A DNA stretch of 64,000 bases, from positions 10,726,001 to 10,790,000 of the forward strand of contig CP075493.1 of NCBI GenBank assembly GCA_021613535.1, in the 5' to 3' direction. This document shows, one piece after another, positions 9,646 to 64,000 of this stretch. A program made the translations under genes and the position numbers. Positions within the stretch are counted from its first letter, which is position 1. Each line of letters opens with the position of its first letter. Source of the DNA: Adineta vaga. Taxonomy: Eukaryota > Animalia > Rotifera. A model generated the notes under the pieces. That model had not been told where the DNA came from. It saw nothing but the letters and a program-made list of their open reading frames with translations, and did no database searches.

Positions 9646-12600
9646 TTAACGATAATTTCGATACATTGGATTTTCAATAGTTAATGGAATCGATGGTGTT
9701 GGTTCATTGGATCGACCGGGAAAGTTTGTATAACTGCCATTAGCCATACCAGCAAATGGATCATTTGTTTGATAACCAGTATTACTACCACTACCACCAC
9801 CATCTGTTACTGTTGATCCATAAGAAGTAGCGTGTTCATTACCATCTAATTAGTAGACAATATGAATACTGTTATACAATTCGAAAAAAAGATCATTTCA
9901 TACATTTATATGTTTCTTCTGTAGATGTTGGTTCTGCCCATGGTTGTTTTTCACCGGATGCAAATAAACCATAAAATATGACACCACCAAAATGTATTAA
10001 TGAAGCGATTAAAAATACGTGTGCCCATTCTTCACGAGTCTGAAAAAGTTAATACAAGAAAATATAGAACAAATAAGAAGATAAAAAAAAGTAGATAAAA
10101 TTTTACGCCATTTTTTGTCAAAAATTCTACTGTTACTGGACATAACATTCCAGCTAATGTACCAACACCATTGGAAATTCCCATAAGAATACTTGCATAA
10201 CGTGGAGCAATATCGAGATGATTGACATTGAATCCTAAGACAAACAGACATAAAGAAAGAATAAACAGAGATGATCTTTTATTATTTTGTTTTCTTATTA
10301 CCTGATATAGCAAAACCACTAAATCCTACGGCGATCGTTAAAGCAAAGATAGCTAATCGAGAAGTTTTTGCATAAGCAACAAGTAGAAGAAATACTGCTT
10401 CCATTCCAAAACCACCACAATTCATTATTTTTCGAACTGCTGTTGTTGATAGATAATTTGCTCGTAGATAATCAGCTAATTTTCCCGCAAATGGAACAAT
10501 ACAAGACATTGTCAAATGAGGTAATGCAGCCGAAAATGGATCCTAGATGATATATGAAAAAATATTTTTTGCTAAAAGAAAAACTCAATCGATATCAAAG
10601 TAAACAAACAAACCTTTCCAACTTTATAATCAAGTGCTTCGCGAAAATATTCGGCCTGAGAATTAATTAATAAATAAAATGACCATGAACGACAAAAATT
10701 AGCGACAATTATTGCCCATACTGGTTTTGAATGAAGAAATTCTCGCCAAGGTGGTTTAATCCAAGTCTAAAATTATTTAATCAAATTCATTATCTTTTAA
10801 TTTATGTTTGGATGTTGATGAAAGAGAAAAAACAAAAACTTATTTATGACACTCCTAGGAACTATAAATTGACTGAAGAATGTTCTGACATAAATCTTAG
10901 TAATATCCTTAAGTATCTTTGTAACCTTGATTCATATGGAAATACTAATGAGAAATGTTTTTCATTATTTTTGTGAATTTCGAGTTTAAATTTGACAGAT
11001 TCTACAGAGCACATCTATTTCTATATCTATATCTATCAATCTATCCTATATTCTCTTTATATTATATTTTCCGATATAAATTATTAATAAAATTTTCTAA
11101 GAAAACACGTTTTCTCTCATTAAATGTAGGGCACGAACATATTTTTGATGTTTTCTTATCCCTTTCGCAAAATAATGATAAATGAGTATCGTCTATTCAT
11201 AAATTCTAACAACAATAAATTACCTTATTAGCAATTGAACTTGCTTCGCCAATACTTTCTTCAATATAGATTCGTTCTTCTTCAGTAATCTTTGGATGAA
11301 TAGCAGGTCGTTCATAAGAATAATGCCACCAATATATTGACCAAATAATTCCAATCACCCCTAATGAATAAAACATAATTTTCTCAAAACAAAAACAAAT
11401 AGTTTTATTTTATCCAAATTTTTACCATAAAAATAGAAAGCCACCTGCCAATTCAAATATTCTGTTAGAATTCCAGAAAGTGGTATGCCAAGTACAGCTC
11501 CCGCATATGAACCTATATGAAGAAAAAGCACTCAAATATACGAATAAAAAACAATTAGTAATGATACAAACCAGTAAATGATATTGTCGCTAATGTGCTT
11601 CGTTCTAATGGTGGTGCCCACCATCTCCATATTCCATGTGCTGCTGGGTACGTTACACCCTAAGTAAAAAAGAAGAAATCCTTTTAACAAAATGAAACGT
11701 CAATATATATTCTTATACTTCAACAAGTCCCTGGAGTATTCGAAGAATCATCACTAAACCATAATGAACTTTGGCAGCCGATGGAATGAATAGATTGAGA
11801 AATGATGATATACCAAGTGCCAATCCAAATACACTAAATACGAACAAACAAAAATATAGGTTAATCATTTGAGAGAAAGAAGATTTTTCTTACTGATTTG
11901 CAGGAAATTTTGCTGCTAAATATCCACCGGGCACTTGAGTTATAAGATAGCCCCAAAAAAAAGAACTATCAACGATACCAATAATTCCTGGTGTCCAATC
12001 GAATTGAGCAAGCTATTGTAAAAGATTCTTATTTTATTAAATTTCAAATATGAATTCGCTTTTTTTCTTTTACTTTAATAAGTTTAACTGTTCCATTCGG
12101 TAATTTTTCTGTTTCATTATGTGTCATTGCTACAACACTAACACCCATATTACAACGAATACCGAATGATATAAGAAAACCTAAGGAACTAAGAAATGCA
12201 GTTTGATATCGTACAGGCATCGTTCTAATTGAATTAATAATTTTAAAACGGGATGGTACATATGAATTGTGTTTAGATGATGTTTCAAGAATTTTTTAGC
12301 ACGTCGACGAACATTTCCATCATCGTCATCAACTAATTCAGCATAGTCTGATTGTGCTTCAGGATTAGGACGTTGTAAAAACCTTTGAAAAAAATCTTCA
12401 TTTTTTATTATCATTTTGAATTGGCAAAGTAAGATAAGCATTGATTATTTTCAGTCATTATTTAAAGTAGTTTACCCAATCTCTCAAAAGTCAAATAAGC
12501 AGAAAGAAAAGAAATTGATTAAAATAATGTTTTTTTTTCCTCATTTTATTTATATCACACCAACCTTCTAGTCGTACGTAACTGACAAGCACAGAAATCA

Positions 12601-51725: not shown

Positions 51726-53270
51726 TTACTTCCTATACAAGAATCTATTCCATAGTCGTACCAAAACAAACAGACAAAACATAACAGTGAGAACGAGAAA
51801 ATAGATCGCTTGCAAATGATTGTGCACAAATGATTGAAAACTAAGTGACGTTCGTTTTATCGTATACTCTTTCCTTAAAGTCGCCCATTTCGGACAAGAC
51901 TCATTCAATGAACCTAGTTTCTTCGTTTTTGGTTGTAGTTTGATTTGTTTCATTTCGCGTTGTACCTCATTTGTCAACATCATCGTCAAGTTTGTTGCAA
52001 CTTCTCGAAACCATTTGATAACATTAGGATATTTAGAAAATTTCATGACATGCTCTTTGTTTTGTATAAGTTGTCTTTCTAAGATCACATGAGATAAGCT
52101 CTTGTTAATGATTGTTGTCCATTTAGCTAAAATGTAAATATATCGAGTTATCATTCCAACCATCAAATACCTACGTTCAGGTAGTTTATAGGTATTATCA
52201 GCAAGATTTTCCATAATCATACTTGCTGATTTGAAATCTTCTTGTGTTTGACATTGTTGAGCAAGACAAAGAAAATGTTGACGTAAAGAACGTCGTTCTT
52301 CTGACGATAGATAGATCTTGTTTTGATTGAAAGTGACAACTAACTTTTGTAGGCGACTTTCGATGGTTGTCGAATTGTCATGATTATTACAGACTGGTTT
52401 CAACTTAAACCATTGACGACTATTCTTTTTGAGATTTGAATTCATATTTCGTACTAACCGACGCCGCCAGTTTGTATGTGCAGTGAGATTTTTCACAGGA
52501 TGCCACCAATTATTTGCTTTCTTTTTTATATCTTCAAATGAATACCTCTGTTTCCAGCTCAATGTATCAAATTCTATAGGTGTTACCACTGTCATGTTTA
52601 AATGCATACTTAATGTTTGTAATAAGTATTCGTGAAATGTAGAAATGCCACGCCATCCAATAAAATCACGAATAGCGTCTAATAAACGTCGACTAAGGCC
52701 AACCCCATTGGTCATAGAGTTGAACCATGGGGGAGGAATCTTTTCATGTGCCATATACCAATGATCCCACGACTTCAATTCCCCCAACATGTTTGATTTC
52801 ATTCTTTTCACAACTAGATCACTTGTATGCCAATACAACTGATGAATCACACGAAATGCATCTACACTCGGAATAAATACATCATCTTCGATTAACCAAA
52901 CGAATGAATAGTTTGTATTTAGTTTACAAAAATACAACAGACTTTTGTCCCATGATGATATATTTATTGGTCGACTATTTATATACATTGTTTGTTGATA
53001 GCCGTCAGTAATACATTGTTGATTAGGAATCTGAAGAATGGTTACAATCGATGATTGGGAAGATTGAATTGTGTATGAGTTATCATCCACCATAACAAAA
53101 ACATCAATATCATAATGCAACCCATCAAGAGCTAATTCTTCAGCAAACAGGAGAGTTTCGGATGCAGGTCGAACAGTAAGAAAACAAACAGCAACAGTAG
53201 CTGTGTCGATTTTGTTTATTTGAAGCGATACTATTATATGAAACAAAATCCAAATGATTTCTAAGAACAT
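51726..53270 (-). CDS. DxD-type glycosyltransferase-like membrane protein, copy 1
   Basis: Intronless. First ATG gives MFLEIIWIL (signal/anchor). AVCFLTVRP, SSWDKSLLYFC, YSFVWLIEDDVFIP, NWWHPVK and a C-terminal TM. Family call is inferred from the hhhhEDD and HPxK motifs. Confidence 0.65.
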   Translation of the reverse strand: MFLEIIWILFHIIVSLQINKIDTATVAVCFLTVRPASETLLFAEELALDGLHYDIDVFVMVDDNSYTIQSSQSSIVTILQIPNQQCITDGYQQTMYINSRPINISSWDKSLLYFCKLNTNYSFVWLIEDDVFIPSVDAFRVIHQLYWHTSDLVVKRMKSNMLGELKSWDHWYMAHEKIPPPWFNSMTNGVGLSRRLLDAIRDFIGWRGISTFHEYLLQTLSMHLNMTVVTPIEFDTLSWKQRYSFEDIKKKANNWWHPVKNLTAHTNWRRRLVRNMNSNLKKNSRQWFKLKPVCNNHDNSTTIESRLQKLVVTFNQNKIYLSSEERRSLRQHFLCLAQQCQTQEDFKSASMIMENLADNTYKLPERRYLMVGMITRYIYILAKWTTIINKSLSHVILERQLIQNKEHVMKFSKYPNVIKWFREVATNLTMMLTNEVQREMKQIKLQPKTKKLGSLNESCPKWATLRKEYTIKRTSLSFQSFVHNHLQAIYFLVLTVMFCLFVLVRLWNRFLYRK

Positions 53271-53570
53271 GGGTGCATCATTAGATATGGATTTGATTCG
53301 GTTGAGAGTATTAATCTTTCTGCACGTAGCAGACGAAGAACGAATAAACGTAAAACAGTTCTCTTCTTTTACAAAGCGCACATTGTATGAAAGTTGTTCA
53401 CAAATTCAATAATAAATAGAAACAATAAAACTTTTTTTCTTTTTCCTTTTCTTTTTCTCTCTGTTCGTGATGCTGCGGGGAGCTTACAGAAGCAGTTTGA
53501 AAGGGTATAGAAACATACAAGAATACAATAAAACTTAATTATACATGAATAAACACAAATGCTTGAAGTT

Positions 53571-55109
53571 TTATTCATGTAACCGACAGAGCCGTAGGAA
53601 AACAAACAGACAAAACATAACAGTGAGAACGAGAAAATAGATCGCTTGCAAATGATTATACACAAACGATTGAAAACTAAGTGACGTTTGTTTTCTTGAA
53701 TACTCATCTTTCCTTAAAGTCGCCCATTTCGGACAAGACTCATTCAATGAACCTAGTTTCTTCGTTTTTGGTTGTAGTTTGATTTGTTTCATTTCGCGTT
53801 GTATCTCATTTGTCAACATCATCGTCAAGTTTGTTGCAACTTCTCGAAACCATTTTATTACATCGATATATTCGAAAAATTGAAATATATATTGTTTATT
53901 CTGCAAAAGTTCTTTTTCGATGATCAAATGAGATAAACTCTTGTTATTGATTGTTGTCCATTTAGCTAAAATGTAAATATATCGAGTTATCATTCCAACC
54001 ATCAAATACTTACGTTCAGGTAGTTTATAGGTATTATCAGCAAGATTTTCCATAATCATACTTGCTGATTTGAAATCTTCTTGTGTTTGACATTGTTGAG
54101 CAAGACAAAGAAAATGTTGACGTAAAGAACGTCGTTCTTCTGACGATAGATAGATCTTGTTTTGATTGAAAGTGACAACTAACTTGTGTAAGCGACTTTC
54201 GATGATTGTCGAATTGTCGTGATTATTACAGACTGGTTTCAACTGAAACCATTGACGACTATTCTTTTTGAGATTTGAATCCATGTTTCGTACTAATCGA
54301 CGACGCCAGGCTGTATGTGCAGTGAGATTTTTCACAGGATGCCACCAATTATTTGCTTTCTTTTTTATATCTTCCCAAGAATGAATGTATCCCCATACTA
54401 ATGTATCGAGTTCTATAGGTGAGACAACTGTCATATTTTGATTAAAACTTAGAGTTTGTAACAAATACTCATGATAAGTACCATCACCTCGCCAACGAAT
54501 ATAATCATTGACAGTCTCTAATAAACGTCGACTAAGGCCAACTGCATTAACCATTGATTTGAACCATGGTGGAACTAACTTTCCATATGCCAAATGCCAA
54601 TGTGCCCAACTCTCTCTCTCACCCGATAGGTTTGGATCAACATGTTTGACTACTAGATCACTTGTATGCCAATACAACTGATGAATCACACGAAATGCAT
54701 CTACACTCGGAATAAATACATCATCTTCGATTAACCAAACGAACGAATAGTTTGTATTTAGTTTACAAAAATAAAACAGACTTTTGTCCCATGATGATAC
54801 ATTTATTGGTCGACTATCTACATACATTAGTTGATGATATCCATTAGTAATACATTGTTGATTAGGAATTTGAAGAATGGTTACTATTGATGATTGGGAA
54901 GATTGAATTGTGTATGAGTTATCATCCACCATAACAAAAACATCAATATCATAATGCAATCCATCGAGAGCTAATTCTTCAGCAAACAGGAGAGTTTGGG
55001 ATGCAGGTCGAACAGTAAGAAAACAGACAGCTATACTAGCTGTGTCGATTGTGTTTATTTGAAGCCACGCTATTATATGAAAGACGATCCAAATGATTTC
55101 TAAGAACAT
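53571..55109 (-). CDS. DxD-type glycosyltransferase-like membrane protein, copy 2
   Basis: Tandem paralog of copy 1 (unit ~1.84 kb) with an intact ORF and the same motifs. Confidence 0.65.
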   Translation of the reverse strand: MFLEIIWIVFHIIAWLQINTIDTASIAVCFLTVRPASQTLLFAEELALDGLHYDIDVFVMVDDNSYTIQSSQSSIVTILQIPNQQCITNGYHQLMYVDSRPINVSSWDKSLFYFCKLNTNYSFVWLIEDDVFIPSVDAFRVIHQLYWHTSDLVVKHVDPNLSGERESWAHWHLAYGKLVPPWFKSMVNAVGLSRRLLETVNDYIRWRGDGTYHEYLLQTLSFNQNMTVVSPIELDTLVWGYIHSWEDIKKKANNWWHPVKNLTAHTAWRRRLVRNMDSNLKKNSRQWFQLKPVCNNHDNSTIIESRLHKLVVTFNQNKIYLSSEERRSLRQHFLCLAQQCQTQEDFKSASMIMENLADNTYKLPERKYLMVGMITRYIYILAKWTTINNKSLSHLIIEKELLQNKQYIFQFFEYIDVIKWFREVATNLTMMLTNEIQREMKQIKLQPKTKKLGSLNESCPKWATLRKDEYSRKQTSLSFQSFVYNHLQAIYFLVLTVMFCLFVFLRLCRLHE

Positions 55110-55397
55110 GGGTGCATCATCAGATATGGATTTGATTCGGTTGAGAGTATTAATCTTTCTGCACGTAGCAGACGAAGAACGAATAAACCTAAAACAGTTC
55201 TCTTCTTTTACAAAGTGCACATTGTATGAAAGTTGTTCACAAATTCAATAATAAATCGAAACAATAAAACTTTTTTCTTTTCTTTTTCTCTCCGTTCGTG
55301 ATGCTGCGGGAAGCTTGTAGAAGCATTTTGAAAGAGTATAGAAACATACAAGAATACAATAAAACTTGATTATACATGAATAAACACAAATGTTTGA

Positions 55398-57375: not shown

Positions 57376-57855
57376 ATGCCAGTTGAAGTCGGCCAACAAG
57401 CTCCTGATTTTACTCTTTATAATACAGAACAAAAAGAAATTTCATTAAAAGATTTAACATCCAAATCCAATGTTGTTCTTTTATTCTTTCCATTAGCATT
57501 CACAGGTGTTTGTACGAAAGAATTATGTTCTGCAAGAGATGATATTAGTAAGTATGAAAAATTAAATGCCACGATCGTTGGAATATCTGTTGATTCCTTA
57601 TTTTCATTGGGAAAATTTCGTGAAGAACAAAAACTTCCATTTGATTTATTATCCGACTTTAATAAAGATGTTGCAACACAATATGATTCACTTTATGAAC
57701 AATTTCCAAAATTTGGTTTAAAAGGTGTTACAAAACGAAGTGCATTTGTTATTGATAAACAAGGAATTATTAAATATGCTGAAATATTAGTTGATGCAAG
57801 CAAAGTCCCAGATTTTGATAAAATTAAACAAGCATTAGAAGATTGTGAGAAATGA
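57376..57855 (+). CDS. Bacterial-type peroxiredoxin (AhpE/BCP-like)
   Basis: VGQQAPDFTL, FFPLAFTGVCTKELC (PxxxTxxC with CxxxxC), GISVDS, LLSDFN, KRSAFVIDKQG. Intronless. Confidence 0.92.
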   Translation: MPVEVGQQAPDFTLYNTEQKEISLKDLTSKSNVVLLFFPLAFTGVCTKELCSARDDISKYEKLNATIVGISVDSLFSLGKFREEQKLPFDLLSDFNKDVATQYDSLYEQFPKFGLKGVTKRSAFVIDKQGIIKYAEILVDASKVPDFDKIKQALEDCEK

Positions 57856-58610: not shown

Positions 58611-60263
58611 TTATGACACAAAGAATTTTTTTGTTAAATTCAATGAATTTAAAATTGAAGCTAAAAGAATTCGAAAAAAGAATTTCGGCCGAAGTAATGA
58701 ATAAGGTGTTTTCTCTTGAAAAACAACGTAAAAAAAAGCAGTTGTTAATTCTCCTGAATAAGCTGCACATTTAATTAGCCAATATGTATACCATTGTAAA
58801 AATTGCATAAATACAGGTGTTTTCGGTTGAGGATAATTCAATGTTGAATCATCACTTCGTTGATAGGTTGTTGTCCGACCGTTTTTATCCGTTTTAATTA
58901 ATTTTAAAGTTGGAACCGCCCAATCATTTGTAATTGAACCAAGCCAACATTCTTCACTGATGGCAGATGCTTGACGATTGTAGATATAAGAAATATCTTC
59001 CAAAGGATAATTTTTGTTGAAAATTTCATTTAATTGTCGTGCTTGTCGACATGCATGTGTCATTCCTTGACCATTTTTGGGATTAAAAACACACATTGAA
59101 TCTCCAACAAGAATGTAATTTCGAGGCCATTTTCGACCTAATTTTTCCACATACTTTCGATCATCGAAAGCACGTCGATATGGAAGTAATGGACTAAGAA
59201 GTTTTGTTGATTTTAAAATCAAATAATAATCATTTGGAAGATTGTCTTTCACCCATTCTAAAAGATTTTCATAACAATCATTCGGTGGATATTCTGAATT
59301 GACACAATATATAGCAAAATTTGATGCAAATCCTAAAGAATTAGGATCTGTTGTGTTCAATTGTCGTATTGGTATCGTAAGAAAACCTTTATTATGATTT
59401 GGAGCATGTGCAGCATTACCACCGACATAAATTGAATCTAATGTTGGATTTCCTGTTTTAAATCGTTCACCAACAAATGAAACATAACCCGTTCCAACAT
59501 GTAATTGTTCAGTTGGAATAATTAAATCAAAATTTTGTTTCAACCATTTTATCGATGAACTATGTCTTCCAGTACAATCAATAATAAAATCTCCATATAA
59601 TTCTTCGTGTTTATTAGAATTGATTTTCGATCGATATTGAACTCCATGAACTATATTTGTTGTTTGATCAACAATTAATTGATTGACTTTTGTATTACAC
59701 ATCCATTGAATTTGTTGTTGATCAAATTGTAAACATAATTCTCTTCGTAAAATGGTTTCTAATGTAAAACGATCAATACAAAACCATGAAAGATCTTCTG
59801 TCAGATTTTTATTTAATAAAACATTGCCAATAATAAAACGGAAATTGTTCTTTAATGAAACTATTTTTGCACCATGATCATTGATTAATCGATTTTTTAA
59901 ATTTGGAAATAAATCAAATAGAATCTTTCCACCTTCACCTTGTAAAACGTGTATTTGATAACTTTGACTAACACCTGATCGACCTAATGTATTGGCATTC
60001 TTCAAATTACAACGATAATCGAAAAGTTCTTCCGTTGTTGAATTCATTAATATTTCATTTAAAACATCATCCGGTTCAATAATTGTAATTCGTTTAAAAT
60101 ATTTCGATAAATATGCAGCTGTTGTCATACCAGCAATACTACCACCCATAATAATTGCATGTTCATATTTCTTATCTGAAGTATCATTGATAATGCGATT
60201 CTTTCGTTGTTTATAAAACCAACAAGTTACTCCTAAGAGAATGAATAAAACGATCCAAAACAT
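58611..60263 (-). CDS. Membrane-anchored FAD-dependent monooxygenase, MonCI/Lsd18-like putative epoxidase
   Basis: N-terminal TM (MFWIVLFILLGVTCWFY), HAIIMGGSIAG, RSGVSQSYQIHVL, DCTGRHS, GDSMCVFNPKNGQGMT. Intronless. First ATG at 60263. Confidence 0.85.
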   Translation of the reverse strand: MFWIVLFILLGVTCWFYKQRKNRIINDTSDKKYEHAIIMGGSIAGMTTAAYLSKYFKRITIIEPDDVLNEILMNSTTEELFDYRCNLKNANTLGRSGVSQSYQIHVLQGEGGKILFDLFPNLKNRLINDHGAKIVSLKNNFRFIIGNVLLNKNLTEDLSWFCIDRFTLETILRRELCLQFDQQQIQWMCNTKVNQLIVDQTTNIVHGVQYRSKINSNKHEELYGDFIIDCTGRHSSSIKWLKQNFDLIIPTEQLHVGTGYVSFVGERFKTGNPTLDSIYVGGNAAHAPNHNKGFLTIPIRQLNTTDPNSLGFASNFAIYCVNSEYPPNDCYENLLEWVKDNLPNDYYLILKSTKLLSPLLPYRRAFDDRKYVEKLGRKWPRNYILVGDSMCVFNPKNGQGMTHACRQARQLNEIFNKNYPLEDISYIYNRQASAISEECWLGSITNDWAVPTLKLIKTDKNGRTTTYQRSDDSTLNYPQPKTPVFMQFLQWYTYWLIKCAAYSGELTTAFFYVVFQEKTPYSLLRPKFFFRILLASILNSLNLTKKFFVS

Positions 60264-60375
60264 GATCACTAACAAATGAATATAATATATGAAGAAAAAA
60301 AATTCAGTTCTTTTTAATAAAACAAGATAAGGTCATTTTGTCAAAGATCTGATGATGTACGTGCGATGTGCACTG

Positions 60376-60413
60376 ATTGGATGCATTCTTTTCTACATAG
60401 AAGATCATGCCAT
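60376..60413 (-). promoter_or_regulatory. CCAAT box plus SRE-like motif upstream of the monooxygenase
   Basis: ATTGG at 60376-60380 and ATCATGCCAT at 60404-60413 (one mismatch to the motif upstream of the cyclase). Confidence 0.3.
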
Positions 60414-60498
60414 AAATGATATCTCTTAGTCATTTTTATTTATCTCAATAGAAAAGAGAACAGAAAAGAAACGAAAGCAAAAGAAAAATATAGGTTTA

Positions 60499-62667
60499 TC
60501 AATATGTATAGTTATGTTTCATAAATCTTCCGAGTGCCCAAATCGGAAAGATATTTCGATAATTTGTATAACTAATCATACAATTTCCATTGAAAACACC
60601 ACTAATGCCTTCTTGATCCCAATCTCCATTTGCTGCTTGTTTTTTCAGAAGAAAGTGAATACCTTGACGGATTACATTCGAATCAGCTTTTGCTGATATT
60701 AATGATAAAACTGCCCATGCTGTATTGATGACTTGTGAATGTTGATGTGGTACATAAGTTTTATGTACACAACTTAAATAAGATTCACCCCATCCACCAT
60801 CAGAATTTTGTTTTGAAAGTAGAAATTGTACTGCTTTTTGAATAGTTTTTGATTGTGGTGATTCACCAACAGTTATTAGAGCATCAATAGCAAACCATGT
60901 TCCGTAAGTAAAACATACCGCCCAACTTCCATACCAACTACCATCAGGTCGTTGTTTACCTTTAATAAATTCAATTCCACGTTGAATAGCAAGATCAATT
61001 TCTTTTCGTCGATGATTAGCAAAATATGTTTGTGAACGAAATTTCCATAAAGCTTGAATACAAGCTGATGTACATTCCGTATAAGAATAATCAACCATAA
61101 TTCCTTGAAAAACTTCAGCTGGATTTAACCATTCAACCCAAGATCCTGCCCGTTGAAGTTCATAGGATGCCCATCCACCATCTTTATTTTGTGTAGTTAA
61201 AATAAAATTAACTGCATCTTCTAAACGATCCGAAGTGATTCGATGTGGACTAATGTACATTTGTTCGTGTAATAGTAATGTCGCTTTCACACCTTCAGAT
61301 GTACAATCAGTTATTGGCCAACCATGATCACGAGTTGAAAATGGCCAACCACCTTTGGATATATGACGATAGAATTTCACATGATCTTTAACATCTTCTA
61401 AAACTTGACTAATATCTAAATAATAATAAGCAGAATTCAAACATTTCGGATATAAATGTCCTAATCCTGTTTCTAAAATAGCTTGAATTGAAAAAGCTGT
61501 ATCCCATAGTTGTGAACCATTATAACCTTGAATTTTCATTCCATCTTCACTTAACCATAAATAATCATCAACACGATTTAAATGCTGTTGAAATTGTTGA
61601 CTTTCTCGTCCCTTAGCATACCATATGGATAACATATTAATAAATTTATTCACTGGACCAATATTAATATAATTTGTATGTTCATCTTCTGCTTCAATAT
61701 AACTAATTAAAAATTCACTTGCCTTTTCACGTAATTGACGAATATGTATTGTTTCATATGTATTCGTACAAAAATTTAAGACTTTCAAAAGTGTCGTCTG
61801 TGGAGAATATAAATCCAATGAACTAATTGAATTTCGATGTTTTGTAAAATCAATATCTTCGTATTTCTCAACGTACAATTCATTTCGTAATTCCTTTATC
61901 AATGGTGTTATTTTACCAACAATTCTCTCGGCATAAACATAACTCATTGGCAAATAAACCATTCGACAATGACACCAATATCGTGATGGATGAACTGGTA
62001 TCCATTCAGGTAATAACCATAGTTCAGGAAAGAGAGAATTAACACCTTCCCACGGCATAACTCCTAGAACACATAACCAAAATTTTGCCCAACTTGGTGC
62101 ATATATTGCACCACCTTCGGATTGAATAAATTGATAAGCTTTTTGTAATCGTTCATTTGAAAAAGGAATATCTAGTAATCGTAAGGAAATATAATTCAAA
62201 ACCGTTCCAAACATAGTTGATTTATTTTCAATATGTGTTCCCCAACCACCATTTGGTAATTGATGATTGAATAAATATCGAATTAATTGATATTTTTGTT
62301 CGTCAGAAAATTGAAAGTTAGTTATATAAGATGTAATAACTGCACCAGGTAATAGAAACATAGGACCACCATAATCACCAGGCCAATGACCATCTTCAAC
62401 TTGTAATGATGAATAATAATTAATTGCATTCAACATACTTTTAACTATCGACGAAGAAAGTTCGTCTTTCAACGATGGAATTCGCATTTTTTCATATTGA
62501 TCTTCATTAACATTGACTGGTTTATAATTTTCTTGAAAAGCATTGTCTCGAAAGATTTTATCGGCTGAATTCGCATTTTCTTCATTGAAATTGACTAAAT
62601 TCGAAGATTCATTTTTAAAATATTTCCAAATTTGTTGTCCACGATCACAAATTAATCGCCAAGCCAT
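60499..62667 (-). CDS. 2,3-oxidosqualene cyclase with cycloartenol-synthase signature
   Basis: WRL..GQQIW, DGHWPGDYGGPMFLLPG, WCHCRMVYLPMSY, IGPVNK, QGYNGSQLWDTAF, DHGWPITDCTSEG, and QW repeats (QRPDGSWYGSW, QNSDGGWGE, QAANGDW). 722 aa, intronless. Confidence 0.97.
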   Translation of the reverse strand: MAWRLICDRGQQIWKYFKNESSNLVNFNEENANSADKIFRDNAFQENYKPVNVNEDQYEKMRIPSLKDELSSSIVKSMLNAINYYSSLQVEDGHWPGDYGGPMFLLPGAVITSYITNFQFSDEQKYQLIRYLFNHQLPNGGWGTHIENKSTMFGTVLNYISLRLLDIPFSNERLQKAYQFIQSEGGAIYAPSWAKFWLCVLGVMPWEGVNSLFPELWLLPEWIPVHPSRYWCHCRMVYLPMSYVYAERIVGKITPLIKELRNELYVEKYEDIDFTKHRNSISSLDLYSPQTTLLKVLNFCTNTYETIHIRQLREKASEFLISYIEAEDEHTNYINIGPVNKFINMLSIWYAKGRESQQFQQHLNRVDDYLWLSEDGMKIQGYNGSQLWDTAFSIQAILETGLGHLYPKCLNSAYYYLDISQVLEDVKDHVKFYRHISKGGWPFSTRDHGWPITDCTSEGVKATLLLHEQMYISPHRITSDRLEDAVNFILTTQNKDGGWASYELQRAGSWVEWLNPAEVFQGIMVDYSYTECTSACIQALWKFRSQTYFANHRRKEIDLAIQRGIEFIKGKQRPDGSWYGSWAVCFTYGTWFAIDALITVGESPQSKTIQKAVQFLLSKQNSDGGWGESYLSCVHKTYVPHQHSQVINTAWAVLSLISAKADSNVIRQGIHFLLKKQAANGDWDQEGISGVFNGNCMISYTNYRNIFPIWALGRFMKHNYTY

Positions 62668-62861
62668 AATCACCAATACAAAATGTATTATAAACTTTAA
62701 CGAACGAAAAAGGATAACGAAGTAAAAAAAAGAAATTCGTTCTCTTCTTTTTCAGATGATATATAACCTCTATGATGTAAGATAAGAACAGCAATATTGT
62801 ATTTTGTTTTATTTACACCTATAAGATTAGTTTATTTCTTGGTTAGAATGATGCAGATGTG

Positions 62862-62885
62862 ATCACGCCATTGTCAGTCGATTGG
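62862..62885 (-). promoter_or_regulatory. SRE-like element plus CCAAT box upstream of the cyclase
   Basis: ATCACGCCAT (62862-62871) fits the SREBP consensus ATCAC(C/G)CCA(C/T). ATTGG at 62881-62885. About 200 bp 5' of the ATG. Confidence 0.45.
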
Positions 62886-63016
62886 CAGAATAGAATGCAA
62901 ATATATTTTATACATCTAGTAAGTATTCTACTTATAGTTTTTAAAGGAAAACAATATAAATTAAAATTTAATGGATATTGTAATATATGTATTTTTTTTC
63001 AATGAGAGGAAATAGT

Positions 63017-64000
63017 CTATGTAATATTTAGAACTGTTTGCATGAGTGGTGCAATTTTATCGACAATATTCGATGTAATGAATTGTGTACGAAAAAAGGT
63101 TCGAACTCTATGTGACAGTTTTTGAATACGAAAGATAACAGCTAATACTTGAATAAAGTATTTATAAGCTTCATGTTCACCTTTTTTATTAACTATATAA
63201 TTCCAAAGGATTCTTGTGTAATGACTTTGAGCTCGACTCACAGCTATTGGATCGTTTAATGATCGTTGATTTTCGTCCATTGATAATCGATCAGTAAATA
63301 GAAGAATCGTCATGAGAATGGATAATACTGCTGGATCTTGTTCAGTTAATGCAACAAGTATCAATTTCATTTCAATAAAACCATCTAGAATATTACTTGA
63401 ATCACCGCATAATTTATAAAATTGACGATGTTTTTCTTCTTCTGCGGATGTACAATGATCAGCTGCTGTTTTATGAAGATAACATTTAAATATTGGAAAA
63501 ACAGATAAAAGATTATGTTTGATCAATAAAAGACGATCATCACTATAATCGAGATTTTCAAATTCATCGATATGACGAAAGAAAGTGATGAATGATAAAG
63601 CAATCTGATTGGTATTCTGTGACCATGAAACAAGAGCCGAAGTTTGATCAGATGTATCGAAAACAAATTGACATGGATGTAGATTTTGAAACATTGATAA
63701 GAATGATGATCGAACACTTTCAATAGTAAGCCAATCTTCAATCGATAATGTTCCAAATAGAAGATTTTCCATTCCAATTGAATCTTCATTTTTGGTTTGA
63801 TCGATATCTAATAATAACTAGACAAAGAGAACATTTCTCTATAAAACTGATTCTACAAACTTACACGATCAAAATCATCAATTGGTTCTATATTCGATAC
63901 GATTGATGATGTGAAAGATTGTTGTGCTGTCGCACTTCGATTTTCTTCAAGACGTTTTTTACGTCGTTGTTTTTCTTCTTCACTCAAAATGAAATCTTTT
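63017..64000 (-). CDS. Nuclear hormone receptor, NR1 type (HR96/DAF-12/NR1I-J-like); hinge and LBD only, DBD off window
   Basis: Post-DBD extension KDFILSEEEKQRRKKRLEENR, 47-nt intron 63864-63818, LBD signature ITFFRHIDEFENLDYSDDRLLLIK, terminal helix IAPLMQTVL. Confidence 0.85.

Follow-up and report, generated by a model that had tools for sequence, protein, structure and literature searches.

As far as we are aware, animals are taken to make sterols via lanosterol or not to make them at all, and cycloartenol is the entry point used by plants, algae and amoebae. Animal lanosterol synthase genes are intron-rich. The parkeol and lanostadienol synthases of sea cucumbers are known animal cyclases with products other than lanosterol, and both originated from the animals' own lanosterol synthase, which was duplicated and then diverged. 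The product-determining sites at which cycloartenol-type enzymes carry Tyr/His/Ile are Y410/H477/I481 of Arabidopsis CAS1, as defined in the mutagenesis literature, and positions 381/449/453 of the human enzyme. Residues Y/H/I at these sites bias the outcome of cyclization and do not fix the product. The window analyzed here, a 64,000-nt stretch of genomic DNA from Adineta vaga, a bdelloid rotifer, carries a gene that the original prediction described as an intronless, horizontally acquired cycloartenol synthase, giving the animal a non-animal route to sterols or triterpenes. A full-text literature search returned papers on bdelloid sterol methyltransferases, and no paper on a bdelloid cyclase or on cycloartenol in these animals.

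The cyclase coding sequence (60499..62667, minus strand) consists of one exon encoding 722 aa, with its stop codon at 60499–60501; in the ORF list, the locus is a single open frame (60499..62676, minus strand) whose first ATG lies at 62667. The window protein is an intact oxidosqualene cyclase of the two-domain class II terpene cyclase/mutase family. Its residues 84–719 match the Pfam domains SQHop_cyclase_N (PF13249, 2e-49) and SQHop_cyclase_C (PF13243, 6e-64), it scored 720 bits against the NCBIfam model for squalene/oxidosqualene cyclases (TIGR01787, cut-off 323), and it contains five QW-like repeats. The best solved-structure match obtained with phmmer was human lanosterol synthase (1W6K, 754 bits), and the alignment placed Y382 (codon 61522–61524; QGYNGSQ) opposite human T381 (QGTNGSQ); pairing of the cyclase DHGWPITDCTSE with the human DCGWIVSDCTAE placed H448 (codon 61324–61326) opposite C449, and I452 (codon 61312–61314) opposite V453. 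The catalytic D454 (codon 61306–61308), within the motif ITDCTSE, aligned with human D455, and a residue check equated H233, C455, Y502 and C532 with human H232, C456, Y503 and C533. The codons of the triad and of D454 lie where the original prediction had put them, and the Thr/Cys/Val triad of metazoan lanosterol synthase is absent from the window cyclase. The claimed contrast between T, C/Q and V in animals and fungi and Y/H/I in cycloartenol synthases was also borne out: T/C/V was present in 118 holozoan cyclase sequences, and T/Q/V in five of the 50%-identity representatives including all three labelled as fungal (Melampsora, Trichoderma and Coniochaeta), while among the top 114 full-length relatives of the cyclase, 112 carried Y/H/I. 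On the basis of the three residues, the product is predicted to be cycloartenol.

RNA-like contigs from three runs covered positions 60417–62675 without a joint and spliced out a 47-nt GT..AG intron (63818–63864) of the next gene, the runs having been classed as RNA-like by an automatic guess with this spliced neighbor intron as the only further support; the splice joint was seen in X4 and X17. The 3′ untranslated region (60417..60498, minus strand) contains a eukaryotic polyadenylation signal, AATAAA, at 60436–60441, and the RNA-like contigs of two runs (X4 record 21 and X18 record 18) stop at 60417, approximately 20 nt past this signal. A minimal 5′ untranslated region (62668..62675, minus strand) was defined by one cDNA-like contig (X17) ending at 62675. 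Beyond this position, the X17 contig carries 23 letters unlike the genome; a spliced leader was considered and rejected, and these letters were read as adaptor in view of their high G+C content and of the lack of an AG acceptor ahead of the junction. The cyclase gene is therefore transcribed and unspliced, as indicated by RNA-like contigs that span the whole ORF and end after AATAAA, in agreement with the predicted lack of introns over 2.2 kb.

The accompanying claim that the neighboring genes are intron-dense held only in part. Upstream of the cyclase lies a spliced nuclear-receptor gene (63017..63990, minus strand) with a ligand-binding-domain exon (63017–63772) and the intron described above; its Pfam Hormone_recep match was weak, and a zf-C4 domain was found upstream of the cyclase in two loci (L012 and L111). 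Downstream, however, a FAD-dependent monooxygenase assigned with Pfam (hereafter flavoprotein; 58611..60275, minus strand; one exon, 551–554 aa), a peroxiredoxin (57376–57855) and, further away, two 550-aa ORFs (51726–55220) are also single ORFs. Kinship of the flavoprotein with the two tandem 550-aa ORFs was rejected, as they proved unrelated on comparison. In all bdelloid loci that were inspected, the flavoprotein is next to the cyclase; MonCI and Lsd18/LasC (E 6.5e-14), both polyether epoxidases, were its only significant PDB matches.

The explanation that we favor, and regard as probable, is that the gene encodes a functional, expressed cyclase of the cycloartenol type, the only one of its genome, which the common ancestor of Adineta and Rotaria acquired horizontally from a microbial eukaryote and which has since been kept at one site under purifying selection. 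The gene content of the genome bears on the use of its product. Squalene synthase, four sterol methyltransferase loci, ERG4/24 sterol reductases, an ERG2-like gene and a 3β-HSD are present, together with an intronless CYP51 that scored 457 bits against obtusifoliol 14α-demethylase versus 330 bits against the human enzyme and has its B′ helix in common with the former. Searches of the genome detected neither a canonical squalene epoxidase (PF08491) nor EBP. The genome yielded 19 matches to PF04116, among which an alternative squalene epoxidase of the fatty-acid-hydroxylase type might be sought. The obtusifoliol-type CYP51 and the methyltransferases, both named in the original prediction as targets of a genome search, accompany the cyclase, in line with the non-animal route to sterols that it proposed. 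That the sole cyclase is of the plant/amoeba type suggests that bdelloids begin sterol synthesis by such a route, in which its predicted product would flow into sterols.

Family analogy suggests that D454, which C455 and C532 hold, would protonate the epoxide of (3S)-2,3-oxidosqualene, for which the adjacent MonCI-like flavoprotein is the candidate supplier, and a chair-boat-chair fold would lead to the protosteryl cation. Y382, H448 and I452, lining the site, would then direct removal of the C-19 proton and closure of the 9β,19-cyclopropane ring of cycloartenol, whereas in lanosterol synthase the proton is taken from C-8/C-9. From gene content, cycloartenol could enter a plant- or amoeba-style route consisting of C-24 methylation by the products of the four methyltransferase loci, 14-demethylation by the obtusifoliol-type CYP51, and subsequent steps by ERG24/DHCR7-type reductases, an ERG26-like dehydrogenase and an ERG2-like isomerase. 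We tentatively suggest, as a possibility short of an even chance, that bdelloids in this way make their own cycloartenol-route sterols with mostly non-animal genes (a protist-derived cycloartenol synthase, an obtusifoliol-type CYP51 and C-24 methyltransferases), a MonCI/Lsd18-like epoxidase having replaced the canonical one.

Alternatively, a cyclase of the same origin may perform other chemistry, yielding either another product derived from the protosteryl cation (parkeol, lanosterol or several products together) or a triterpene that is not a sterol and serves in defense or signaling, with membrane sterols being taken from food. Product specificity hangs on only three residues, one orthologue has the substitution I452V, and the flavoprotein resembles epoxidases of secondary metabolism; the failure to find a canonical squalene epoxidase or EBP points in the same direction. 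Bdelloids are also reported to turn acquired biosynthetic genes against pathogens (PMC11258130). This alternative nevertheless appears unlikely, given that almost every orthologue retains the full triad and the catalytic residues under purifying selection, and that CYP51, methyltransferases, reductases and ERG2/ERG26-like genes make sense only after a sterol-forming cyclase.

The origin of the gene was examined in maximum-likelihood trees (LG+C20+F+G4; 77 and 45 rows) with supports from quick-search SH-aLRT and an uncertain root; the trees were built without spiralian (mollusc or annelid) lanosterol synthases, and P0019, from the two-exon cyclase gene of L094, was entered without its first exon. 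In these trees, the window cyclase branched with cycloartenol-type cyclases, outside the lanosterol synthases. The bdelloid clade was nested (98–100% SH-aLRT) among cycloartenol-type cyclases from eukaryotic metagenome contigs, and the fungal and holozoan lanosterol synthases formed a separate clade (96–100%). The closest uncultured-eukaryote relatives share 56–64% identity with the window protein and lie on contigs with RasGEF, TPPP, IML1, Erg28 and ACBP-ankyrin genes. The flanks of these sister contigs, which come from metagenomes, contained one fungal-type Zn2Cys6 domain and no animal-specific domain, and it is by gene content that the contigs are judged non-animal. The D-Tyr-tRNA deacylase of L094 had no match in the rotifer genome, a result that speaks in neither direction, and a search with the DUF285 neighbor gave only weak matches (0.81). 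A microbial eukaryote is accordingly the likely donor within the explanation that we favor. Joint transfer of cyclase and methyltransferase was not supported: the L094 methyltransferase and the four A. vaga loci share only approximately 36–50% identity, and no bdelloid protein was among the best 120 matches of the former.

A bacterial donor, from Bacteroidota or a relative, might be proposed instead of a eukaryote because the gene is intronless and because the best organism-labelled matches were Bacteroidota and Chitinophagales enzymes, 49–55% identical and bearing the same Y/H/I triad. However, bacteria fell outside the clade of bdelloid and uncultured-eukaryote cyclases (96–98% support) in both trees, the closer relatives are on contigs with eukaryotic genes, and the L094 cyclase gene is itself interrupted by an intron; since the nearest relatives are intron-bearing genes of uncultured eukaryotes, the lack of introns is no evidence for a bacterial source, which we consider decidedly improbable. 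The original expectation of cycloartenol-type, non-animal relatives, with bacteria among them, stood as to type and is refined as to the nearest kin, which are uncultured eukaryotes and not bacteria.

Vertical descent would require that an ancestral eukaryotic cyclase of the cycloartenol type survived alongside lanosterol synthase as far as the rotifer stem, the former being lost in all other sampled animals and the latter then in bdelloids. The uncertain root of the cyclase tree and the derivation of the sister sequences from metagenome contigs without an organism label leave some room for it, and a vertical origin has been advocated for the sterol methyltransferases of animals, the rotifers joining the others only after gene-tree/species-tree reconciliation (PMC10692144). 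Even so, Capsaspora, Trichoplax, echinoderms, hemichordates and chordates all have T/C/V enzymes that form one clade with those of fungi, the bdelloid clade is nested within, and not sister to, non-animal-looking eukaryote sequences, and two paralogues would have had to coexist over hundreds of millions of years with many independent losses. No labelled non-bdelloid animal with Y/H/I was among the best 120 matches, a set that did not directly cover monogonont and other spiralian genomes. On balance, vertical descent is very unlikely.

Convergence of an animal lanosterol synthase on Y/H/I after intron loss is scarcely credible. The identity of the bdelloid cyclase to animal enzymes (49%) is like that to bacterial ones, and the human enzyme is its best structural match, an argument that is weak because few cyclases are in the PDB. 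In contrast, Y/H/I is the triad of 112 of its 114 best relatives, and forcing the bdelloids to group with Holozoa was rejected (delta lnL 155.2; p-AU 2.3e-7). Descent from animal lanosterol synthase is thus rejected by the AU test, and the nesting within metazoan enzymes that the original prediction had named as evidence against itself was not observed.

The cyclase is a genuine integrated host gene. Its locus was the only match of the PF13243 profile, and of a starfish lanosterol synthase protein, in the 100.8-Mb genome (6 contigs), so that the proposed search for a lanosterol synthase found no cyclase other than the Y/H/I locus. It lies well inside a contig of chromosome scale (at 10.79 of 18.1 Mb), and the flanks of the cyclase carry nuclear-receptor, Nup88, ephrin-receptor-like and GPCR genes. 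Orthologues in Adineta and Rotaria are 77–85% identical. The gene order nuclear receptor, cyclase, flavoprotein, (peroxiredoxin), Nup88 was repeated in Rotaria socialis, and the same order from nuclear receptor to Nup88 was seen in two further bdelloid-like contigs (30–50% G+C); in total, four loci of at least two genera have the cyclase flanked by a nuclear-receptor gene and Nup88. A DNA contig from a separate study (X1 record 5) spans 60253–63717 across the junction of the cyclase and nuclear-receptor genes, an RNA-like contig links the cyclase to its spliced neighbor, and the cyclase stretch was present, whole or in part, in 20 runs from 10 studies among those listed. The GC3 of the cyclase (0.154) is close to that of host neighbors (0.13–0.17), and its codon composition is host-like. 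Compared with the Rotaria gene, dN was 0.13 and dS 0.68 (dN/dS approximately 0.19), and the Y/H/I triad was kept in 15 of the 16 bdelloid-clade sequences, P0015 having V at the third site (I452V); the gene is under purifying selection across bdelloids. Contamination or a chimeric assembly, foreseen in the original prediction as a possible undoing, has a negligible probability, because the gene is in the interior of a chromosome-scale contig, DNA contigs of other studies cross the junction to an intron-bearing neighbor, gene order is repeated in other genera and codon usage is that of the host. As a whole, these results support the proposed horizontal acquisition of a cycloartenol-type cyclase that falls outside animal lanosterol synthases and is integrated and expressed.

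If the cycloartenol-route reading is correct, cyclization of oxidosqualene to cycloartenol would be known in an animal for the first time. The lanosterol-only rule for animals would be broken by a bdelloid whose sole cyclase is of the cycloartenol type and which also has sterol methyltransferases and an obtusifoliol-type CYP51. The locus would then provide a directly testable example of an animal that reconstructed a lipid pathway of several steps out of genes that it acquired. The neighboring flavoprotein is a candidate for a squalene epoxidase of non-canonical type and would, if our reading of it is true, represent a new kind of this enzyme. Monogononts have reportedly been limited on sterol-poor bacterial food in earlier studies, and a pathway of this kind might help to explain the growth of bdelloids on such food. 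The finding also bears on the currently disputed ancestry of sterol methyltransferases, and hence on the reading of C28/C29 steranes as biomarkers: the rotifer and annelid enzymes have been argued to be ancestral animal genes (PMC10692144), and if the rotifer cyclase and CYP51 are foreign, vertical descent of the rotifer methyltransferases becomes less plausible.

Among known systems, cycloartenol synthases from Amoebozoa and other protists (Acanthamoeba castellanii CAS and a homologue in Stenamoeba stenopodia) and from plants (Arabidopsis CAS1) belong to the same two-domain family, have the same triad, share the (I/V)xDCT(A/S)E motif and are 50–54% identical to the bdelloid cyclase, which differs from them in having an animal host, in being intronless and in being the sole cyclase of its genome; it also adjoins a MonCI-like flavoprotein instead of belonging to a genome with a canonical squalene epoxidase. 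The nearest relatives are the uncultured-eukaryote cyclases P0019 (L094), P0022 (L095), P0021/P0429 (L114), P0020 and P0117 (L113), with 54–64% identity and a nearly identical N-terminus (MAWRL..DRGQQ.W). In three contigs, the uncultured-eukaryote gene is head-to-head with a sterol methyltransferase, to which the bdelloid methyltransferases are not close, whereas the bdelloid neighbors are a nuclear receptor and the flavoprotein. Bacterial cycloartenol-type cyclases (Bacteroidota and Myxococcota) are likewise Y/H/I enzymes encoded by single ORFs, with 47–55% identity to the bdelloid enzyme, but they fall outside its clade and neighbor a polyprenyl synthase and an amine-oxidase-like FAD protein. 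Human lanosterol synthase (1W6K) has the same fold and catalytic Asp, Cys, His and Tyr residues and differs by T381/C449/V453 and by belonging to a separate clade. Sea cucumbers, finally, are likewise animals with a non-lanosterol cyclase, from which the bdelloid cyclase differs by its probable foreign descent.

The cyclase is encoded on the reverse strand by a long ORF (60499–62676), whose first ATG at 62667 gives a protein of 722 residues. This protein matched the Pfam domains SQHop_cyclase_N (2e-49) and SQHop_cyclase_C (6e-64) and the family TIGR01787 (720 bits), and a residue-by-residue alignment with human lanosterol synthase (LSS; 1W6K) scored 754 bits. In the alignment, Y382 (codon 61522–61524), H448 (61324–61326) and I452 (61312–61314), all on the reverse strand, corresponded to the human product-determining residues T381, C449 and V453, and D454 (61306–61308, reverse strand) corresponded to D455. 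H233, C455, Y502 and C532 aligned with human H232, C456, Y503 and C533; the catalytic motif is ITDCTSE, and five QW-like repeats are present. The alignment thus bore out, in residues and positions alike, the Y/H/I signature and DCTSE motif of the original prediction. By every sequence criterion available the cyclase is of the cycloartenol-synthase type, and its predicted product is cycloartenol itself. In an orthologue (P0015), found at 10001–12166 of L012, a contig of a bdelloid-like genome with 50% G+C, the third product-determining site is occupied by Val and not Ile, giving Y/H/V; this might shift the product mixture.

Among the 120 best matches to the cyclase, 112 of the 114 full-length proteins carried Y/H/I, and the sole T/C/V protein was a fish enzyme. 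Phylogenetic analysis included holozoan LSS (Capsaspora, Trichoplax, echinoderms, hemichordates, amphioxus and vertebrates), fungal, heterolobosean, diatom and amoebozoan sequences, and 80 organism-named bacterial loci. A FastTree of 375 sequences and two maximum-likelihood (ML) trees under LG+C20+F+G4 (77 and 45 rows) agreed on the main points, in a sampling without spiralian LSS or monogonont sequences; supports are SH-aLRT values from quick searches. Fungal and holozoan LSS formed one clade (96–100%). The bdelloid cyclases formed another (99%), whose sister was P0019 (100%), a related cyclase represented in the alignment by a sequence lacking exon 1; P0022/P0021/P0030 and then P0020, P0032, P0117 and P0025 followed, all within a clade supported at 96–98%, outside which lay Bacteroidota, Methylococcales and Myxococcota. 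Nesting within metazoan LSS had been named in the original prediction as a result that would speak against horizontal acquisition. Forcing the bdelloid and holozoan synthases into one clade cost 155.2 log-likelihood units (p-AU 2.3e-7), so this placement was rejected, and the cyclase is not a member of the animal LSS clade.

A PF13243 profile search of the whole genome (G000, a 100.8-Mb assembly of six contigs, in which the window is C1:10726001–10790000) matched only the cyclase locus, and a starfish LSS query found the same locus alone, at 49% identity. No canonical intron-rich LSS was detected in the genome with these two queries; the cycloartenol-type enzyme is the sole cyclase of the genome. 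Its best named protein matches, at 85% and 83% in Adineta ricciae and A. steineri and at 77–80% in species of Rotaria, identify the animal as a bdelloid of the genus Adineta; public records label these orthologues only as “terpene cyclase/mutase family member”.

The genes of the window run nuclear receptor–cyclase–flavoprotein–(peroxiredoxin)–Nup88. This arrangement is shared by Rotaria socialis (L109, L110) and by a pair of bdelloid-like contigs from metagenomes (L111, L012), which additionally hold GPCR and ephrin-receptor-like genes in their flanks. All or part of the cyclase stretch was found in public runs (twenty listed, from ten studies), and a DNA contig from a 2015 study spans 60253–63717 and so connects the cyclase with the gene next to it. 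Contigs from two runs, X4 and X17, were identified as RNA because a 47-nt GT..AG intron of the nuclear-receptor gene (63818–63864) was spliced out; the RNA status of the runs is a software guess, supported by this spliced neighbour, to which one X4 contig links the cyclase. Together with contigs of X18, which unlike the other two show no nuclear-receptor splice joint, they cover the cyclase from 60417 to 62675 without any joint, in agreement with the earlier claim that the gene lacks introns; they show the presence of the transcript rather than its level of expression. Contigs of two runs stop at 60417, ~20 nt past an AATAAA at 60436–60441. A cDNA-like X17 contig leaves the genomic sequence at 62675, 8 nt 5′ of the ATG, and extends into 23 G+C-rich non-genomic letters, which we read as library adaptor, setting aside a spliced leader. 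Third-position G+C of the cyclase was 0.154, against 0.13–0.17 for its neighbours, and 0.57 in the orthologue on the 50% G+C contig L012, indicating that the gene has adopted the composition of each host. Comparison with the Rotaria orthologue gave dN 0.13 and dS 0.68; the resulting dN/dS of 0.19 is an upper bound, because dS is probably underestimated. A contaminant or chimeric join, which the original prediction had allowed for, is spoken against by the spanning DNA contig and the syntenic loci and, with transcription, composition and selection also considered, is excluded for practical purposes.

The contigs carrying the closest relatives were also compared. In L094 the P0019 cyclase has a ~130-nt intron after codon ~95 and is flanked by SNF2, RasGEF and a DUF285 protein. 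L095 (P0022) pairs its cyclase with a sterol methyltransferase, as in L094, and holds a TPPP gene; the pairing is seen again in L114 (P0429), beside an ACBP-ankyrin gene and Erg28, and the flanks of L113 (P0117) hold IML1 and a fungal-type Zn2Cys6 protein. These four contigs, from uncultured organisms, are eukaryotic, and no animal-specific domains were found in their flanks, whereas the bdelloid-like contigs carry nuclear receptors and GPCRs. As Stenamoeba, an amoebozoan, is moreover the closest of the eukaryotes with a name, we infer that the donor was a microbial eukaryote, an amoebozoan or a holomycotan being the best guesses. The intronless state of the rotifer gene, set against the intron in its closest relative, fits processed-copy transfer or later intron loss and does not point to bacteria. 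The methyltransferase, a sterol C-24 methyltransferase, lies head-to-head with the cyclase in all three contigs (L094, 7993–11875; L095, 7842–12019; L114, 1–4262), and Erg28 lies 2 kb from the pair in L114; these pairs look like a small sterol gene cluster of a protist or fungus-like lineage.

Downstream of the cyclase, on the same strand, lies a single-exon FAD monooxygenase of 551–554 aa (58611–60275), the flavoprotein whose position is kept in all bdelloid loci examined (Rotaria and the two bdelloid-like contigs). In the PDB it had significant matches only to MonCI and Lsd18/LasC (E 6.5e-14 to 3e-10), polyether epoxidases that use flavin to introduce epoxides at the unactivated double bonds in linear polyenes. 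Because the canonical squalene epoxidase domain (PF08491) was not found in the genome, the flavoprotein is the obvious candidate for making 2,3-oxidosqualene in its place. Its nearest clusters in an Atlas placement were Basidiomycota, which we take as a lead only. A single-exon AhpC/TSA peroxiredoxin (57376–57855, forward strand; 159 aa; 2e-37) is shared with L111 and absent from the Rotaria locus. Between it and Nup88, two tandem single-exon ORFs on the reverse strand (51726–53381, 551 aa; 53571–55220, 549 aa) share 85% identity and have no Pfam or NCBIfam matches; the loci of Rotaria and L111 have nothing at this position.

Elsewhere in the genome, we found a squalene synthase ORF (323 bits against the human enzyme), one strong 3β-HSD match (206 bits), nineteen FA_hydroxylase family matches and, among the genes that the original prediction had proposed to seek, four sterol methyltransferase loci with the C-terminal domain. 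Sterol methyltransferases have already been reported from bdelloids (PMC10692144; bioRxiv 10.1101/2022.04.22.489198). ERG4/ERG24-type reductases gave 15 matches in about ten places, several being single long ORFs. Those at C4:4236692–4237822 (L004), C5:6765532–6766575 (L006) and C1:10353409–10354524 of assembly G000 are intronless and others have several exons; the reductases may be of mixed origin. One ERG2/sigma-1-type gene matched strongly (292 bits; single ORF at G000:C1:2502943–2503608, L115) and EBP (PF05241) was not found in the genome; the animal may use a fungal-type step for Δ8-Δ7 isomerisation.

CYP51, also proposed as a target, was located with a back-translated helix-I motif, which gave one genome match (reversed control, zero): an intronless P450 gene of 494 aa on the reverse strand (L096:943–2427; G000:C6, about 8798137–8799621). 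Its best solved relative was “obtusifoliol 14α-demethylase” 6q2c, which we take to be the Acanthamoeba enzyme, at 457 bits versus 330 bits for human CYP51. Its B′ helix, Y-T-F-T-I-P-V-F-G, aligned gap-free with 6q2c. A Phe here is characteristic of enzymes that prefer obtusifoliol; human CYP51 has a one-residue insertion and Leu, whereas the rotifer protein has Y-T-F with no insertion, as in the protist/plant type, and may represent a second foreign sterol gene. In full-text literature searches, neither a cyclase nor cycloartenol came up for bdelloids, in which horizontal gene acquisition is otherwise well known.
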